Shown in pieces: positions 7,037-35,570 of a stretch of DNA of 64,000 nt. Position numbers and translations under genes: made by a program. The notes beneath the pieces are model-generated. The model was not told where the DNA came from, ran no database searches, and was given only the letters and a program-made list of their open reading frames with translations. This stretch comes from Azolla caroliniana (Eukaryota; Plantae; Polypodiophyta), in assembly GCA_043228905.1 (NCBI GenBank), contig JBHGNT010000001.1:6634001-6698000 (forward strand), read 5' to 3'. Position 1 is the first letter of the stretch. The number at the start of each line of letters is the position of its first letter.

Positions 7037-10000
7037 TCTCAAACCATGACATTGGACGTTCAACTTCTTCTTTATTTCAACAATCTTCAATGTAAGCAAG
7101 CAAATTAATGTTTAACATATGGACAAAATTTTAGAAAAATAAATTATAAATCATCTATTTCTAAAAATGACCAAAAATTATGTTTGCAGATAGAACCAAA
7201 GAGGCATACACATCCAGTTACAAACCATGTATATACAAATTGGGATGAAACAATTGTTTTTGTGATATCTCGTTGTATATTCACTCATTGTAAATACCAT
7301 TATGATATTGAAAAGGAATTGCTTCTATTGTCCTATCAATTCTCCGTGTTAATATCTTGTAGTGGTTATACATTACCATGATCCCTCATTCCTAATCTTC
7401 TTTTGTATTACCTACGTTGTGCAATGTGTGCATCATAGATCATGGACAAGAAGGATGTAGAGTAGAAGGTTTAGATGTAGGACATTTCTAGGGCTTTGGG
7501 GTTTTCCACTCCTTGAATACATCTCAACACCATTGTAATTGATATCTTGAAGCATATAATTTTGAGGCTCTCCCTCGATGACCAAGTTGCTAGTTGGTGT
7601 AATTAGTTATATGTCGGCCTATCAACCATATTTGATGTGGTCTGGCACCACCTTCTTACGCAAGTTTGATAGGAACTTATTCATGCAAGAGGTCTACAAC
7701 CTCTTTTACATGATGTACCAACTTTCTCACCAAAGTTGCCCTAATCCCTTGTTCCATTCAAGTCACAATTGTGCCCGCTATTGCCCAGATGAAGGGGGTT
7801 GACTTGAAGGTGATTATGAAGTCGAGGATCAATCAACCTCTCATCACTTATTATTAAGTACATGGCATACATTGTGCTTCCCATGCTTTTCTAATGACAT
7901 CACTTTGGGGTTGGTACCAAAGGGATAACTCTAGCAATAAGGGGGCAATAGAAAAAAAAGTAGAAATGCAAATATTTATTGGTTAGTACAAGTAGCTTTT
8001 AGGGTTCTTTTGAGTTTCTTATTCTTTTAATCACTTTTGAGGTAGAGCGTTGACCTATCTCTCTCTCACTCTCTTTGGTGAAAACACACAATTATATTAA
8101 TAAATGTGTGTAAAAAACACTACTTACAATGGGTGCGACAATGGAGTATGGTCACTCACTAAATACATTACATGGGTAGTGGAACATGTTGAATTGCCGA
8201 AAGGCAAGACGAACACTCCCCCGAGGAAAGAATTTCCACTTGCTCCAATAAAGAAAATTGCCACATTAGTACTCCCTTCAACTTTTGTTGATATGCTTTC
8301 ACTCCATGTCTACCATTGAATACAAAAGTGTTGCGCATATTCCAATTATGACGCAATCCCCAATATCTCAGAAATAGAAATATCCCCAATTATGACGCAA
8401 TCCCTAAACCCTAAACCCTAAACCTGTGTAAATTGTGCAAACACCCACTGTCTAGGTGTCAAATAACACTATGATAAGACTTGCCAAATAACTCCAAATT
8501 TGACAAGCAATCAGACATTGTATAAATCGATGAGTAATATCTTCCATTTGAACAGTGCAAAAAATGCAATTACCCGTTGCTAATCCACAACGCTTTAGAG
8601 CTAATCCCAAAGGCTCCAATCAAAACTGTCCAAATGAAGACCTTTGCTACAAGTGGCAACTTAGAATGCCAATTACGTTGTAAGATCTGCCACCACCCAT
8701 GATCATATTTGTGTATTCTCCATTCTTCTTCAACCTTAGATGATAACCATCCAAGAGACTCAACAGAGCAATGATACAAAAGATTAGTAGTCACTTGTAA
8801 CAAAGATGTTTGACCCTTTAAACACCAATCAATCTACGGTCGTTCTCCTGTTTGTAGAGGTAAGAGACCTTGCATCAATGGAATATTTTGTTATAGTTGT
8901 TGCCAAATAAACCCATAATTAGCCGGAATGCGTAATAATTGTCGTGCTTCAACAAACTCCAAAACTCTTTGAGATGAAGCCTCAATTGTATCTCCCACCT
9001 CTTTGACCCCCAAACGAAACAAACGATTAAATTGAGAGTGCAATCTCTCCTTTCCCAGGCAACATAATAACCGAGAAGATACAAGCAACCATTTTTGCAA
9101 AGAATTACAATGCTCTCTACTATATGATGGTTTCCATACACATAACAAGAGTGCTTCTTGCCATGAGGTAACCAAGTGTTGAACACATGTAGAGTCCGGA
9201 ATCCTAATTGAAATACATTCATTCAGTAATTGCCACCATGAAGCCTTAATCGTTGTCCTTCCATTTGTTAAACCCTTGTTCTCAATGAAATATTCAACAA
9301 TAGATATCCATGTTTGTGAGTTTGAACACATGTCTTATAATAATGAAAATCTATAAGCCATCATATGCTTAGATAAGTTCAATATTCCAGTTCCCTCCAA
9401 GCGCTTGGGAGTTGCTAGATGATTCCACACAACCCAAGTGATTCCCATCTTATCCCTCTTCTTCCACAACAAATATTGAAGAGGTTGCAAAATAGAATGC
9501 AAAGCCTTCTTTGTCCATGGCAACAATGGCAAGTAATATAATATCATGGGTTCCATAATACATTGTACAACCTTCAAGCGTACATGAATGGTCAAGATTG
9601 TGACTTCCAATACATGAACTTATCCCTCAATTTACTAGACATCCATTCAATCAATTGACCATTTGTAACATTCATTCCTAATTGATAGCTGCCCAAGTGT
9701 CGAAAAATAGAGCTTTTTTTTACCATAGATCCTTGTCATCCAAAACATTCCAAATCCCTTTCAGTACATAATATGAGACTAGACTTCCTCCAATTAATAT
9801 GTAATCCGAAAAGCCAATGCAAATTGGTTCCATACAAGCATCCCCTTCTCAAGATTCTCTCGTGAGGCTTGTAGAAACATAAAAGAATCATCAACCAAAG
9901 CTTGTGCTACTAGTTGCCCTCTAGATGGAAGGTGTAGACCCACAATGTCACCATTTGTTGCAAGCCCTTGATAACATCACTAACAAGGGATGAGTAATAA

Positions 10001-19156: not shown

Positions 19157-20189
19157 GGAAATATAGGCAAATAGGGACATGTGACCTATGAGACTAACCC
19201 TCGCCTTTTACAACTATGCTTTTGGAATTGCAATGGATACCCATGGAATGCGGGATTTGGCATAAAGGAGTTCATCGATGACTTAGATATCACACTTCTT
19301 GTTGAAACATGGGAGCATGATACTCAAAGGTTTCAAGGTTTAGGAAACTATAATGTACACTCTTTGATATGGAAGAAAAATCCAAGACAAAGAAGAGGAC
19401 AAGGAGGGGTGGCATGTTTGATTAAATCGGAAATAGAGAAATATGTGTCAATCATAAAAAATGATGAACATAAATGTTGCATATGGCTTAAAATAGAAAC
19501 ACCTAATGATTTGCCCACTTTTGTAGTTGGATGTTACATTCCTCATCAAGATTCTAACTTTTATGCTTGTTTGGATAAAGATCAACCTTTTGCCAATCTA
19601 GAAGATGATATTACTTATTTCAAATCCAAAGGGGAAGTTATTGTCTTTGGTGACATGAATGCTCGTACAAGAAATTTCCAACTTGATTCACAAGAATCTT
19701 TCATGCCACATATTTCAAGGATGCAAGAGGATATGTAAATGTATAGCCACTCTTCTAGCGATGAAAAATATCCGAACCAATTTGGGAAGTTACTCCTACA
19801 AATGTGCAATAGTACTGGATTGCTTATTGCAAATGTTATTTTCTTATGGCCCAACACTAATGGTTTTACATGTAGAAAACACAACGGAAATAGTGTGATT
19901 GACTATGTGCTACTTTCCGAAGGTATTTTCGATCAGATACATAAATTCTCACTTGGCGAATGGACATTGGAATCCGATCATAGGACTTTATGTATTGATC
20001 TCAAATGTATGCATAAGTTTGATTGTGAGCAGGCTATTGAAGATAATAAACAACCACACTTGAGCATGAACCTTAAGCGAACGCCCATGTATTCCAAGAT
20101 GGTTGAGGATATTATGTTACAAATGACAAAGATACAACATAGTGCCACACTAGAATGCAAATGGGAAGCTTTCAAGAAATGTTTCTCGA

Positions 20190-20308
20190 CCAACCGCACA
20201 TCTTGTGAGTTTTAGACTGTGAGGTCGATTCAAGGCGTGCAAGTGGTATACAATCGGTGGGTGGGTGTATGTGAGGGAGAATGAGAGTGAAAGAAGAGAA
20301 ATGTGAGT

Positions 20309-20343
<35 letters not shown>

Positions 20344-21752
20344 TGTGTGTGTGTGTGCGCGTGCGAGTGTGTGTGAGTGTTCAAATTTGATGATGTGGGA
20401 GGTATGGGGGTTGATATATTTGGTGTGGGATAAAAGATTTTATGGGCTTATTTGAAAACAAGTAGGGGAGTGTGAGAGAGAAAGAGAGAGGCCGGGTAGA
20501 AGAGAAGTGATGTGAAATTTTAGAAGTCAAGAGAGGAGAGGGATGAAATGACAATTTAGATAAGAAAAAGGGAAGGGGAGGAGGAAAAATAAGGTTTTAA
20601 GGGGGGAGGGGCATATTGAGATTAGAAGTAGAAGGGGGAAGGGTAGAGCGAAAAATTGGAAAAGTAAGGGGAGGGATAGGAGTATAAAGTGAGGGGTAGA
20701 TTTAAATAAAAAAGGAAAAGTAAAAGCGAGGGGGAAGGAAGGGTATTAGGATAGACTAGAGAAATAGGAACAAACAAGAAATAAGGAGAGGGGTAGGAGG
20801 ATGCTAAAATAATGAAAAGTGAGAGGTGGAGTTTAAAATAAGAAAAAGCGAGGGGAGGGTATGGTGAGAATTACTTAAAAGTACGAGAGGGGTAGAATTG
20901 AAAAATAGGAAACAATAAAAGATGAGGGGAGGGGTAGGATTAGAAAATAGGAATAAAGAGAATGAGGGGAAGATGCTAAAAATAAAATAAAAGGTGAGGG
21001 GTAGAATTGGAAAATAGGAGAAATAGAATTAGGAGGATGCTAAAAGTGAAAATGAGAGGGGTAGAGTTAAAAATAAGGAAAAGTGAGGGGAAGGGTATCA
21101 TGAAAATATTGGAAAGGTAGGGAATGGGTAGAGTTGAAAATAGGTAAGGGTATGATGAGAATTGGGTAAAAATAAAAGAGGGGTAGAGTTAATATAGAGA
21201 GAGACTATGGGGGAAGGATATCATACTAGAGAAAGTGAGTGGGATGGAGAGTGATGTAAGGTATATTGGTTACAACGGAAGGGTAGAACATGTGTTGAAT
21301 ACAAATGCCGGCTACAATGTAGTCCCGCGCATTGGAAAGGAAATACTAAGATTATGCAAAATGCTGACTATCGAAAGTAGTCCCATGCATACATACTAAA
21401 AGAGACAAAAGGGAATGCATGGCTACCGAATGTAGTCCCATGCTTACAATGAAAAGATGTAAGGAAGTGAGAGATAGGATGTTGAAGGCGTGTATGGGAT
21501 GTCGATGATGCCGATGTTGTTGTTGCAAAAGCCTTCCACTTGAAATGAGGGAACTCGACACGAAGTGGATACTCGAGGGGTGTCGATAATATGCCATCAT
21601 GGGTTCACTTCTCCTGTGGATGGTCCTCCATAGAATTTCCTACAACTTGTGAGTTTTAGACCATGAGGTCGATTCAAGGAGTGCAAGCGGTATACAATCA
21701 ATGGGTGGGTGTATGTGAGGGAGAATGAGAGTGAAAGAAGAGAAATGTGAGT

Positions 21753-21820
<68 letters not shown>

Positions 21821-22225
21821 CACTAAAAACTAATTCATATTAACAAACTTAAAAGGTAATACAAAGGAATGGTCGATGTGGCAAACTAGTTTCGCTCTTA
21901 AAGAGCTCATCAGTGCACATGACCATGTAGAATTTGAGGGGTTTATATAGGGGAGATAAGGGGGGGGAAGGAGAGAGAGAATGTGTGTGTGAGTGTGAGT
22001 GTTCAAATTTGATGGTGTGGGAGGTATGGGGGTTGATATATTTGGTGTGGGATAAAGAGAGAGGAAGGGTAGAAGAGAAGTGTGTGATGTGGGAGTTAGG
22101 GAGGGTGAAGTATATTGGTGTGTATGAAAAGATTGTATGGAGAAACTTAGGAAAAAATGTTTTGATAAAGAATGTCGTGAAGCTTGAAAGTGTCTTATGG
22201 TTTTGGATGTAGTTAAGGATAAAGA
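20190..22225 (-). mobile_element. Non-coding, partially tandem-duplicated hammerhead-bearing element (candidate retrozyme or non-autonomous Penelope-like element) inserted in the LINE
   Basis: Direct repeats at ~20203-20435 and ~21647-22060 (offset ~1444 nt). The right copy has an extra ~160 bp between AG tracts that contains the ribozyme. The middle is strongly purine-skewed. LINE coding sequence stops at ~20185 and resumes at ~22225. Boundaries are approximate. Confidence 0.65.
21869..21926 (-). ncRNA. Type I minimal hammerhead ribozyme
   Basis: Minus strand: AUGGUC-AUGUG-CA [CUGAUGA] GCUCU-UUA-AGAGC [GAAA] C-UA-G U U / UG-C-CACAU-C-GACCAU. Complete catalytic core, 5-bp stem II, palindromic minimal stem III (ACUAGU), and 13-bp stem I with two single C bulges. 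Predicted cleavage after GUU (between 21884 and 21883). Confidence 0.85.
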
Positions 22226-25200
22226 GAATTACCAAAAGCATTTGCATGAGTATAAAAGGCTTATTAAAAGAAAGAGAAGAATATGGGAAGTTACTCAACA
22301 ATTCATCCAAACGTAAGAGAAAGCACATGCATGTGCTAAATTTTGGGGAAATCTAAAGGGGAAACATTTTGAGAGTTATGGTAACTTAACTCTTCACGAC
22401 TTGTCTATGCATTGTAAGAATTTATATGAGTTATCTCTTGCCAGAAAGATGATGTGTTATGGTTCTCTTTCACATATGTCTCGCTTCTTTACAATTGAAG
22501 ATATATGCATAGGACTTAATAAATTGGCATCATGAAAGGCAAGCGATCTTCAATGTATAAAGGCTGAAATGCTCAAATGGACAGGAAAGGAAGCACATGT
22601 ATGGATAAGCGATATATTTAATGATGCATTGCAACATGGTATGTCGTACGATTGGACTACAAATTGGATCAAACCTTTACATAAAGGGGGAGATGTAAAT
22701 AATGTAAACAACTATTGAACCATCATGGTTGGCTCATTAATGGCAAAACTATTTCGATGTATAATGGAATCAAAGATAAGTGTATGGGCTGAAAAAAATG
22801 GTAAGAGAGCTTATGGACAAGCTGGCTTTCGAAAACACCATAGCACCATTGATCACCTTGTCACCCTTCGAGTATTAATGGAGGAAAGTCGCCTTAGAGG
22901 TAAAGGTTTATATTGTTGCTTTGTAGACTTCAAGAAAGCTTTTGATATGGTACCTTGTGAGCATCTTTGGAGGCGAATGGAAGAACTTGAGGTGCCAAGT
23001 GAATATATGCTTGCAATTTCCCGAATTTATGAGAAGGTTATATGTTGTGTGCGTATGAGAGATAACCTTTTAGATTTCTTCAAAAGCATTATTGGTGTTA
23101 AGCAAGGATGCCCACTCTCACCAACACTATTTGGTCTATGAATTGATGAATTGGAAGAAATGGTTACCAAGTTTGCAAAGGAAGAATGTGTTGAAGAAGT
23201 TGCCATTAGGAATGTTGTGATTATGCTTTTGCTATATGCAGATGATGTAGTGCTTTTTGCAAATACTTTAGGAGATACACAAAAGCTTATGAAGGCATTG
23301 GAAATTTTTTACGTGCATACTAAATTAAGTGTCAAAAGCTCTAAAACAAAGATTATGCTTGTGAAGAGCCAGAAAAGAGATAAACCATGCATTATGTATA
23401 ACAATGAGCCACTTCAATGTGTGGAAAGCTTCAAATATCTTGGCCTTGAAGTTCCTTCAAATCATAGATGGAATGAATGTGTTACACGCCGCTTAGAGGC
23501 GAGTAAGCGAGCCTACTATGCATTTGAGAACACATGCAATCTTGGAGATATTAAGTGTTGGGTCCTCAAGAAATATCTTTTCGACACTTTGGTGACACCA
23601 GTTCTTCTCTATGGGGTGGAAGTATGGGGTGGTAGTATCCCTAAATCTATGTGGAAAGAGTTTGAAAATGTCCAAAAACATTTCCTTACAAAGTTTCTAC
23701 AAGTTAAGAAACAAACGCCCTACACCCTTTTCCTCATTGAGACGGGATCGCTTCCCATTGAGATCATGGCCATAGAAAGGGTTGTTGAATACATGCTTAA
23801 GGTTCACAAAAGTCCCTCACATCCACTTCCTAGAATTGCATGGGAAGCAAGCAAAAAGATCCAAAAGACACATAAAAGCAAAATTTTGTGTTCCGGTTGG
23901 ATCCAAGATATAGAAAAATAGTTTGGTAGATGGGATGCGAGACACTTGCTTCATGATGCATCACTAGATTCCTTTGTAAATGAGGCCTTTTTGCAACACC
24001 AATGTATCATGACATGGGACAAACGTGGAGGCTCACACTTCACACATTATACTACACATGTTGCACCTAACTACAAAACCATATTCTTTGCGGAACGGGG
24101 AAACCGTACACATCTATACATGTTAGAGCCAATACCGTTATCTGCCATTCGAACCATTGCGTCCATGCAACTTAGCTCACATGCATTGCAATGTGAGACA
24201 GGGCGTTGGGGCACAAGTGATGAGAGTGGTCGGCTATGCACAATTTGTCGTTTGGTCCTGTAGCCTTATATTGGCCATTTTGCATATCTATTTCTCTCTC
24301 TCTCTCTCTCTAAACAAGTTTGCGAGTCTAAGTATCACACTTTGATACAATGCTCTGCCTTTGATCATATTCAACCATGCTTTCCACATCTCTTTGATCA
24401 AACCTAATCCTTGTGTGAATTCCTCTCACAACCACAATGTGCACTCTCGATTGCAACATTCATTGGTAAAGTTCTTGAACATCGAGAGTCACTACTCACT
24501 TTCACATGTATCACGTGAAATGTAATCTTTTTGGTCTCATAGGTCATATTTGACCTCCGAAGATGATAATATAATCTATCTATCTATCTTTGGTGTCATG
24601 TGATAGTAATACTCATTTTGATTATAACTTATAATGACATATTTTGATTCAATCATTAGTTGTGAGATGAGAATGAGCTCATCATCAATACAATTATGTT
24701 TTTGAATTATTTGATTTTTATGTTCATGCTTTCTAATGTTTAGTAGTTAAGGAATTCGTCAGTTTTGAACTTTCAATTGTGTTGACATTTGATTCAATCA
24801 ATATATAATATAGACCATAGTCATTTTTTAAAATTCCAACTTATAAATCCAATCCAACTTTCAGATTGATTTACCATACACGTTTGATTGAATCATTCTC
24901 GAACGTGAATTCACGTATGGTGCATATGATTCAAAATTGATACCCACGCAAAGGGCACAAGAAAATTTATCCAACAATTGAGCCCACTTGTCTTGTGTCC
25001 ACTATAAAGAGATCCTAAATTGCATGCTTGTCCAATGAAAACATTGACCAAAATCACCTATTTCCAAGCTGCACTAATACTCCCCCCTACACAAGGCACA
25101 TTTACATTCACAACAAAGTTTTCCCATTTGCATGGTTTAGGTGCTTTCCTGACTAGAATTTGCTTCTCGCGTTCTGTTTGTTGTTTATTTTTACTTGTTT

Positions 25201-33347: not shown

Positions 33348-35570
33348 TTAAAAATTTGGAAAAGAGAAAGAAAAGTAGTCAGATATGCACATACCAGCTT
33401 CCAGCCATCCATGTTTCTCACAGGAACTAAGGAAAGTTATCCAGACAATATAATTAGGTTCAAATGGCATCTCATGGACCACACATTCTGCCTCATCCAT
33501 ACATCCCGCCCTCCCCAAGATATCAATCATACATATATAATGTTGTATGGTAGGTGTCAGGGTGTGATAATTTATCATGGATTGAAGGTAATAAAACCCC
33601 TCCTCAATCAATCCCCCGTGGTTACATCCAGCTAGAAGACTGATAAAAGTTACTTCATCTGCTCCAAAATCATGGTTTTGCATAGTCTCAAAGTAAGATT
33701 TTGCTTCCACCATATGCCCATGCTCCGCATATGCACAAATTAATGCATTCCATGAAACTCCAGTCTTATTGGGCATTCTCTTGAATAACACATCTGTGTC
33801 ATTTAAGCTACCACATTTGGCATACATATTGATAAGACTATTACAAACAACTAGTTCCTCCTCAAACCCTCTCTTTGCCACATCGGAATGAATAGATCTT
33901 CCTCGATCCAATGCTGCCATGTTGGAACAAGCTTTGAGAATTGCAAGAATTGTATATTCATCTAGTCCAAGCATTATGCTCTCTTTCTCCAACCTTTTTG
34001 ATAATTCCAACGCTCTACAATTGTATCCATTATCTACATAGCCACTGATCATGGTGTTCCAAGATACAATATCTTTTAAGACAAGATTATCGAACATCTT
34101 GTAGGCATCCTCTAGACTACTACATTTTGCATACATGTCAACAAGAGTGTTTCCAAGTGTTGAACCCACCTCAAAGCCTAGCTCCACAACCTCAAAATGG
34201 ATGATTTTGCCACTATCTAGTGCTTCTGTGCTCGAGCATGCTTTAAGAAGGTTCACTAACGTCACTTTGTTTGGCCTTGTTCCATAATTCTTCATCTCTA
34301 CATAAACATTTAATGCTTCATCTCCACATCCATATGAAGTGAGACCTGAAATTAACGCAGACCAAGCCACAACATCCTTAACAAACAAATTTTCGAACAT
34401 AGTTCGAGCATCATCTAATCTACCACATTTTATGTACATGTCAACAAGTGTACTTCCAACAAACTTATCTGATGCAAGCCCAATCTTTGTTAACTCGGCA
34501 TGTGTTGATTTCCCTTTCTCTAGGGCTTCTAGATTTGCACAAGCTTTAAGGACCGATACAAATATGAATCCATCAGCTTGTATACCTTCCTCCCTCATGT
34601 TGTCATATAGATGGAGAGCTTTCTCATCATTTCCATGTTCCTGATACCTTGCAATGACAATAGACCAAGAAACTACATTTCTAACTCTCAGCGCATCGAA
34701 CACTTTATATGCATCTGATAAACTTCCACATGTTGCATACATATCAACAAGAGTGCTTCCAATGAGTACATCCAAGTTGATACCTAGCTTAGTGATGGCA
34801 ATATGGAGTTCTTTTCCTTCTTTTACATCAAATGTGTTCGAACATGCTTTAAGCAAACACAAGAATGTCACTTCATTTGGTTGTATCCCATGCTTCCTCA
34901 TCTCTTTAAATAGTTGAATGGCCTTGTCAGCATAGCCATGTTCAGCGTAGCCTAGAATCATGGAAGAACAAGCTACCACATTTGGGTCGTCCAATCCTTG
35001 AAAAACTTTATATGCATCCAATATACCACCACATTTAGTGTACATATTTATCAAGGTTGTTCCAATATACTTATCCCTTTCAAGTCTCTCTTTTAGGATA
35101 TAGGAATGAACAAGCCTTCCACAATCTACAGAACCAGCATCAGTGTATGACTTGAGGATGCATATAAGCGTGACTTTGTCCGGTTTGAATCCATCCAAAA
35201 CCATTTCTCGAAACAACTGAATCACTCGTGAATGATGGCCATGTCTTTTAAAGCCTTGAATCATCATAGACCATGAAACCACATCTTGAATGCAAGATTT
35301 GAAGAACAATGACCAAGCATCCTCTATATTTCCACATTCAACGTACAACTCAAGCAAAGCATTATAGGTACAGAGGTCATTTTGTATCCCTCGATCAGTA
35401 ATTTCAGTATGTATGAGCATGCCTTCATGTAAAGCCATGTGATTGGCACACGCTTTGAGGGAAGAAATGAGTGTATACAATCTATCTTCCACATCGGTGG
35501 GCTTCAACGAACAATAAAGAAGTAGGTTTTGTTGGATACAACTTCGACACAATGCAGGAAGAGCTGACAT
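33348..35570 (-). CDS. PLS-class pentatricopeptide repeat protein with a partial E domain and no DYW domain (organellar RNA-editing factor type)
   Basis: Intact 740-aa ORF with repeated LVDMYAKCG / VVSWN / VTFLxLLKAC triplets, ending PTIQHYICMIDILGRAG...MPFEPNYIVWITFLSSC. Confidence 0.93.
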   Translation of the reverse strand: MSALPALCRSCIQQNLLLYCSLKPTDVEDRLYTLISSLKACANHMALHEGMLIHTEITDRGIQNDLCTYNALLELYVECGNIEDAWSLFFKSCIQDVVSWSMMIQGFKRHGHHSRVIQLFREMVLDGFKPDKVTLICILKSYTDAGSVDCGRLVHSYILKERLERDKYIGTTLINMYTKCGGILDAYKVFQGLDDPNVVACSSMILGYAEHGYADKAIQLFKEMRKHGIQPNEVTFLCLLKACSNTFDVKEGKELHIAITKLGINLDVLIGSTLVDMYATCGSLSDAYKVFDALRVRNVVSWSIVIARYQEHGNDEKALHLYDNMREEGIQADGFIFVSVLKACANLEALEKGKSTHAELTKIGLASDKFVGSTLVDMYIKCGRLDDARTMFENLFVKDVVAWSALISGLTSYGCGDEALNVYVEMKNYGTRPNKVTLVNLLKACSSTEALDSGKIIHFEVVELGFEVGSTLGNTLVDMYAKCSSLEDAYKMFDNLVLKDIVSWNTMISGYVDNGYNCRALELSKRLEKESIMLGLDEYTILAILKACSNMAALDRGRSIHSDVAKRGFEEELVVCNSLINMYAKCGSLNDTDVLFKRMPNKTGVSWNALICAYAEHGHMVEAKSYFETMQNHDFGADEVTFISLLAGCNHGGLIEEGFYYLQSMINYHTLTPTIQHYICMIDILGRAGCMDEAECVVHEMPFEPNYIVWITFLSSCEKHGWLEAGMCISDYFSFSFPNF

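Follow-up and report, generated by a model that had tools for sequence, protein, structure and literature searches.

Features of the Locus

The window, by which is meant the whole stretch of DNA analyzed (64,000 nucleotides), contains an L1-type LINE that is interrupted by a non-coding insertion, and a minimal type I hammerhead motif lies within this insertion. The features are as follows, with the basis for each assignment in parentheses where one applies:

19181-23921, plus strand: L1-type LINE of very high copy number, interrupted by an insertion (ORF domains, contig depth)
19181-20215, plus strand: endonuclease ORFs of the LINE
22725-23921, plus strand: reverse transcriptase (RT) ORFs of the LINE
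20206-22140, minus strand: non-coding insertion of ∼1.93 kb, a partial tandem of 1.3 units (contig joints, loose ends, no Pfam domain)
21642-22087, minus strand: upstream pseudo-LTR-like repeat copy (copy B), including the hammerhead segment (repeat alignment)
20198-20515, minus strand: downstream repeat copy (copy A), without the hammerhead segment (repeat alignment)
21819-21982, minus strand: 164-nt hammerhead segment, present only in copy B (repeat comparison)
21869-21926, minus strand: minimal type I hammerhead motif (script-checked pairs, shuffles, fold)

Positions 19500-23000 (3,501 letters) were compared with the contigs of four public runs: three DNA runs, from organisms coded A, B, and E, and X19, a probable RNA run of organism A. 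The contig depth of the LINE is ∼1e5 in run X1, and in the DNA runs of the three related organisms it is ∼100 times that of the hammerhead element. Other copies of the LINE connect ∼20205 to 22141 with 11 letters between, and it is for this reason that 20206-22140 is regarded as an insertion; the contig joints are 20179>22151 and 20205>22141, and a loose-end consensus is found at 22141. About 11 nt of the LINE target were removed at insertion, and no target duplication was seen. The insertion is antisense to the LINE and is C/T-rich on its sense (hammerhead) strand. Its ORFs (20206-22140) contain no Pfam domain, and ORF homology searches found no homologues of these spurious reading frames.

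The repeated unit measures ∼1.45-1.6 kb. Two blocks recur with 95% identity: 21642-21785 matches 20198-20341 and 21983-22056 matches 20361-20434, at spacings of 1444 and 1622 nt, respectively, a difference of 178 nt. The insertion has, in other words, the structure by which Penelope-like elements are recognized, a partial tandem giving direct terminal repeats; partial tandems forming pseudo-LTRs are a hallmark of this group (PMC8557442, PMC11167929). What marks an autonomous member, an ORF for a telomerase-related reverse transcriptase between the pseudo-LTRs, is absent from 20206-22140, and no Penelope-type reverse transcriptase was found in the window. Because its two repeats are 5% diverged, the insertion is old; the locus is probably a relic. 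No tRNA-Met primer-binding site was found in the element.

The hammerhead segment is bounded on both sides by runs of the CT dinucleotide, and in copy A a CA run directly abuts the CT run. The simplest account is that the segment was lost from copy A by deletion between CT runs. Inside the segment, a TATATAAA box (21949-21942) precedes stem I by 16 nt.

The ends and the interior of the insertion have a few peculiarities of their own. At the 3' junction, the element reads CTCA|CAAGATGT and runs on into the LINE; at this point the full unit reads CTCACAAGTTGT. The junction shows microhomology between element-internal CTCACAAGTTGTAGG and the LINE target CAAGATGTGCGG (20201-20213 and 21639-21653, minus strand), which suggests either that a longer RNA was primed internally or that the template was switched. 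At the 5' end, 53 nt (22088-22140, minus strand) are situated outside the repeated unit; 22085-22140 is 79% similar to 20391-20445, inside the repeat, and resembles the one-sided "tail" of Penelope-like insertions. The interior at 20560-21240 (minus strand) consists of degenerate C/T-rich repeats of ∼34 and ∼67 nt around CUACCCCUC, for which TRF gives periods of 34 and 67 with 67-76% matches. Three related hairpins at 21305-21445 (minus strand) fold no better than shuffles (z = −0.86).

Anatomy of the Hammerhead Motif

All parts of the motif are on the minus strand, and they are listed here in the direction of the RNA:

21926-21914: stem I, 5' strand, AUGGUCAUGUGCA
21913-21907: core CUGAUGA
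21906-21894: stem II, GCUCU-UUA-AGAGC, with a UUA loop
21893-21890: core GAAA
21889-21885: CUAGU
21890-21885: palindrome ACUAGU
21884: U17
21883-21869: stem I, 3' strand, UGCCACAUCGACCAU

A script was used to check every pair. Stem I is open-ended and consists of 13 standard pairs, with C21880 and C21875 bulged, while stem II has five Watson-Crick pairs, the first being G10.1-C11.1. The hammerhead core is complete, with C3, U4, G5, A6, N7, G8, and A9, then G12, A13, and A14, followed by the A15.1-U16.1 pair (A21890/U21885) and H17 (U21884). No extra nucleotide separates A9 from G10.1, and A21907 is directly followed by G21906.

What is unusual is the place where helix III should be. The six nucleotides A15.1-C-U-A-G-U16.1 are self-complementary with zero loop; because this palindrome leaves no loop, helix III is not formed within a single molecule, and ACUAGU pairs only between two copies. 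The triplet at the cleavage site of the window copy is GUU, which is a poor cleavage triplet; it may be a decayed GUC, and the block that other copies share (see below) includes this position. From the sequence, cleavage is predicted 3' of U17, between 21884 and 21883. The preliminary description of this DNA had given the coordinates, strand, and stems of the motif, its GUU triplet, and the palindrome ACUAGU at stem III, and the pair-by-pair check bore it out on each of these points.

This is the one hammerhead motif in the window: no further copy was detected at up to three mismatches or with a relaxed core-plus-stem descriptor, and the downstream repeat is devoid of it. A tandem dimer is, therefore, impossible from this locus.

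Copies in Related Genomes and Signs of Transcription

One part of the motif is shared among the contigs of the related organisms, as defined by the limits of contig homology:

21881-21916, minus strand: shared block comprising the core, stem II, the palindrome, U17, and the three innermost pairs of stem I

These limits, at 21879/21881 and 21916/21917, recur in contigs of organisms A and B and of the probable RNA run (X1, X5, and X19). The sequence beyond them differs, and the loose ends agree with each other at only 0.62-0.72. In addition, the 117-nt bin with the motif (21840-21956) is several-fold deeper than its neighbors in X1, X5, X15, and X19. The boundaries of the shared block, together with the bin depth, argue that the motif is a conserved, multicopy unit with a variable distal stem I.

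These relatives are also informative about stem I. After 21915, an additional base is present in three contigs of X5 (organism B) and in one of X19; in the RNA this base is G, and by pairing with the bulged C21880 it would make stem I continuous. The window copy has, therefore, probably lost one stem I base from a helix that is continuous elsewhere. The loose-end consensuses suggest two subfamilies of stem I. The first, to which the window copy is similar, has 5' AUGGUC and 3' GACC (GACCAU here); the second has 5' GACCUU and 3' AAGGUC, a perfect 6-nt complement near the core. Distal strands swapped in this manner would amount to covariation, of which these heterogeneous consensuses from different runs give only a hint.

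The stem II module has a wider distribution. The pattern CUGAUGAGCUCU-NNN-AGAGCGAAAC was found at 48 metagenome loci, nearly all of which, on inspection, have flanks compatible with a hammerhead, although they belong to other families; for this reason the module appears typical of real ribozymes. The CUAGUU end is present in none of these 48 loci. Separately, six matches to CUGAUGAG...CGAAACUAGU in viral contigs were set aside as phage-type hammerheads, with a long helix III and unrelated to the family in the window.

Is the family transcribed? In X19 the depth is ∼15-23 in the element interior, 49 in the hammerhead bin, and 3-40 in the LINE, unlike the DNA runs, in which the LINE is ∼100 times deeper than the element. 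A 755-nt contig of X19 covers 21073-21707 at ∼91% identity. As it differs from that of genomic DNA, the X19 profile fits RNA of paralogous copies, and transcription of the hammerhead family from such copies is probable, as judged by contig depth, a strandless measure.

Nature of the Element and Alternative Readings

In the reading preferred here, to which we give a probability of about 0.72, the carrier is a non-autonomous Penelope-like or retrozyme-like retroelement, placed antisense in the LINE and equipped with a dimer-dependent type I hammerhead. The copy in the window is solitary, has the GUU triplet, and bears a 1-nt deletion in stem I, and with these features it is most likely a relic, weak or inactive, of a family that is itself active.

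A different and rather unlikely history is that the 164-nt segment is a small independent hammerhead mobile unit, inserted in the CT microsatellite of copy B after or during the insertion of the carrier. Such a history would agree with the lack of the segment in copy A and with the CT runs on both of its flanks, as well as with the greater depth of the hammerhead bin compared to the remaining element and the many contigs that share the core alone; the preference of Penelope-like elements for microsatellite targets (PMC8557442) is also in line with it. However, a deletion in copy A between the two CT runs is equally simple, and the ends or the target duplication of an inserted unit are indistinguishable from the microsatellite. 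Furthermore, 21957-22073, just upstream, is also deeper than the element interior, which suggests that the repeat and the hammerhead travel together.

Could the motif simply be a look-alike that arose by chance, with no ribozyme ancestry? It is single-copy in the window, its surroundings are of low complexity, and Rfam makes no call at threshold, yet this reading is very improbable in the face of the statistics. The 64-kb window contains a single instance of the 25-nt stretch of core and stem II, against an expectation of 0; if every core with a stem II of 5 bp or more is counted, 200 shuffles still give an expectation of only 0.045 per 64-kb window. The stem I duplex has an energy of −13.5 kcal/mol, which is equalled or bettered at 0.125% of random positions (100,000 positions of the window, with the same spacing), and the fold of 66 nt has z = −3.8. 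When the palindrome and the UH requirement are included, the joint chance expectation is ∼1e-6 per window, a rough estimate made by judgement. Against chance there is also the exact core block, which is found in many contigs and in at least three organisms with differing flanks.

Among the tests of the motif, the Rfam scan, one of the checks proposed in the preliminary description, was the only negative one. None of the hammerhead models matched at gathering scores, and a permissive scan returned only Hammerhead_3, at 19.9 bits (E = 0.16) against a threshold of 48.5. The alignment is a poor type III register in which stem I collapses and stem III contains four non-standard pairs; it was rejected on pairing. 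Minimal hammerheads of Penelope-like elements escape canonical descriptors (PMC4209133), and the miss is accordingly read as a limit of the models and not as counter-evidence. This sole alignment would make the motif a hammerhead of type III, belonging to a plant LTR retrozyme, which is scarcely tenable: Hammerhead_3 is indeed the best Rfam match and the interior between the direct repeats is non-coding, but the score is far under the threshold, the register pairs badly whereas that of type I gives 13 + 5 clean pairs, the element has no primer-binding site, and the 4-bp target duplication is not seen.

Folding and Proposed Mechanism

Turning back to the carrier as a non-autonomous Penelope-like or retrozyme-like element, folding energies show what its hammerhead could do. 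In the minimum free energy (MFE) fold of the monomer (−19.4 kcal/mol), C3-U4-G5 is sequestered against the palindrome; the fold with open stem I and stem II has −17.6 kcal/mol. Two separate monomers together have −38.8 kcal/mol, and a double hammerhead, in which the stem I strands are exchanged and helix III forms between the two molecules with 6 bp, reaches −40.6 kcal/mol. The MFE structure of the dimer, at −46.6 kcal/mol, is an extended duplex and not the double hammerhead. On comparing −40.6 with −38.8 and −46.6 kcal/mol, the active dimer is predicted to be accessible yet not favored. Low activity in vitro, or assistance by proteins, has been reported for ribozymes of this kind (PMC4209133, PMC11167929), and the prediction agrees with it.

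How would such an RNA be cut and propagated? A single copy of the type in the window would be unable to form helix III. In two copies, present in a tandem transcript or meeting in trans, the ACUAGU palindromes would pair with each other to give a helix III of 6 bp, the stem I strands being swapped, and the resulting double hammerhead would cut 3' of U17 (21884|21883). Multimeric or read-through RNA of the element would be trimmed in this way, and a Penelope-type reverse transcriptase supplied in trans would copy the trimmed RNA to give partial tandems like that in the window. Cleavage, its dependence on a dimer, and mobilization by a Penelope-like reverse transcriptase are all inferred. It is established that type I hammerheads whose helix III is absent or has only 1-2 bp, with a palindromic cap in its place or at its end, are poor at cleavage in monomeric form and work as double hammerheads when the transcript is tandem. 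As for its consequences, the literature is uncertain on whether hammerhead cleavage is required for the transposition of Penelope-like elements (PMC11167929).

Comparison with Known Systems

Minimal type I hammerheads in the pseudo-LTRs carried by Penelope-like elements were described by Cervera and de la Pena 2014 (PMC4209133), and dimer-acting variants by Lunse et al. 2017, as cited in PMC7761336. The window motif is best classed with the minimal hammerheads of Penelope-like elements and shares with them the open stem I, the G10.1-C11.1 pair of stem II, and the palindromic stretch from 15.1 to 16.1 that permits dimers; like them, it has numerous copies in a genome, their flanks varying, and is sited in a terminal direct repeat of a partial tandem. 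It differs in its long stem I (13 bp), its GUU triplet, and its non-seed plant host, and its carrier has no reverse transcriptase ORF. It also does not have the extra nucleotide between A9 and G10.1 that is present in the metazoan minimal forms.

With regard to plant hosts, type I hammerheads associated with Penelope-type retroelements are found in the endonuclease-less Penelope-like elements of Selaginella moellendorffii (PMC4209133) and in the Chlamys/PLE-X subclades of Chara and spike mosses (PMC8557442), and in these respects the motif in the window is similar. However, those hammerheads are described as canonical, having a true helix III as well as contacts between loops, whereas the window motif has only a palindromic stub, no loop 1, and no adjoining telomeric reverse-complement repeats; the only run of this type in the window is at 8399-8423.

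The animal non-LTR retrozymes (PMC7229834; bioRxiv 10.64898/2026.07.22.740005) provide another parallel, since they too are non-coding and tandem and, as is probable for the family in the window, expressed as RNA, contain type I hammerheads with a weak helix III, and have been proposed to be non-autonomous derivatives of the pseudo-LTRs found in Penelope-like elements. Their units are of ∼170-400 nt with a hammerhead in each, while the unit in the window is of ∼1.45-1.6 kb, and its 1.3 units contain a single hammerhead.

Plant LTR retrozymes (PMC4918200) resemble the window element in being plant retroelements that encode no protein and have their hammerhead placed in a terminal direct repeat. 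One of them, NbRZ1, has a promoter in its LTR (PMC9695139), and the TATA-like box of the window repeat may be one as well. In contrast, their type III hammerhead, primer-binding site, polypurine tract, 4-bp target duplications, and dependence on gypsy elements have no equivalent found in the window element.

These comparisons agree with two ideas already put forward in the preliminary description. One is that the open stem I and the palindromic stem III have the architecture described for Penelope-like elements and animal tandem retrozymes, whose hammerheads work as dimers (PMC4209133, PMC7761336); the other is the contrast with angiosperm LTR retrozymes, which is upheld by the type I pairing and by the lack of a tRNA-Met primer-binding site in the element. 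A third idea, that of a self-cleaving RNA element of a class atypical for plants, stands in part. The element does belong to a repeated and apparently transcribed family, but "atypical for plants" is an overstatement in view of the host, most likely a non-seed plant, and of the precedents (PMC4209133, PMC8557442, PMC4918200).

Plant Precedents and Significance

To our knowledge, angiosperms are reported to lack Penelope-like elements and their hammerheads, and the plants in which these are known are limited to Selaginella, conifers, and a few algae and mosses; nor do we know of any description in plants of a counterpart of non-LTR retrozymes, kilobase-sized and dependent on Penelope-like elements. 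The individual precedents are few. The type I hammerheads in Penelope-like elements of Selaginella are canonical (PMC4209133), two Chlamys subclades of Chara and spike mosses have type I hammerheads (PMC8557442), and conifers contain endonuclease-less and Dryad elements (PMC9033089). For ferns, "isolated examples" of hammerheads were mentioned in 2016, in a survey where a few type I motifs occurred among all of the plant matches (PMC4918200).

Against this background, the Penelope-style minimal hammerhead widens the range of a known kind of ribozyme, adding a group of plants in which it has barely been described. A broader proposal is that ferns, or a non-seed lineage, harbor a counterpart of the animal non-LTR retrozymes, made of kilobase-sized, non-coding, transcribed elements with dimer-dependent minimal type I hammerheads in their pseudo-LTRs, and moved by endonuclease-less Penelope-like elements. 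We advance it tentatively, as a possibility that is somewhat doubtful at present. A populous and transcribed family of Penelope-style minimal hammerheads in a fern-like genome would close a gap in where Penelope-like elements are found, and non-coding carriers of hammerheads would then not be peculiar to animals. It would also offer a plant system in which to ask what the ribozyme does for its retroelement (PMC11167929). In any case, the motif in the window illustrates a class that is missed by Rfam thresholds.

Other Features of the Window

Two other features lie outside the LINE. At 8399-8423 (plus strand) there is an interstitial plant telomere-type repeat, (CCCTAAA) × ∼3.4, which is preceded by ccaattatgacgcaatcc twice and has no hammerhead core nearby. 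At 33348-35570 (minus strand), in a transposon-rich region, is an intact, intronless PPR gene of the P class that encodes 740 aa. An exact look-up of this protein gave no record, but its similarities point to a non-seed plant as host, probably a fern; a separate protein search likewise places the host in Streptophyta. Several congeneric species of one 2018 study, together with leaf and plant metagenomes, hold related sequence, which would suit a small aquatic fern such as Azolla, as a guess. No angiosperm appears among the top 120 matches of its protein; the best identity, 52%, is to two Adiantum species, and other matches are from Ceratopteris, the lycophyte Diphasiastrum, Ginkgo, and Cryptomeria.
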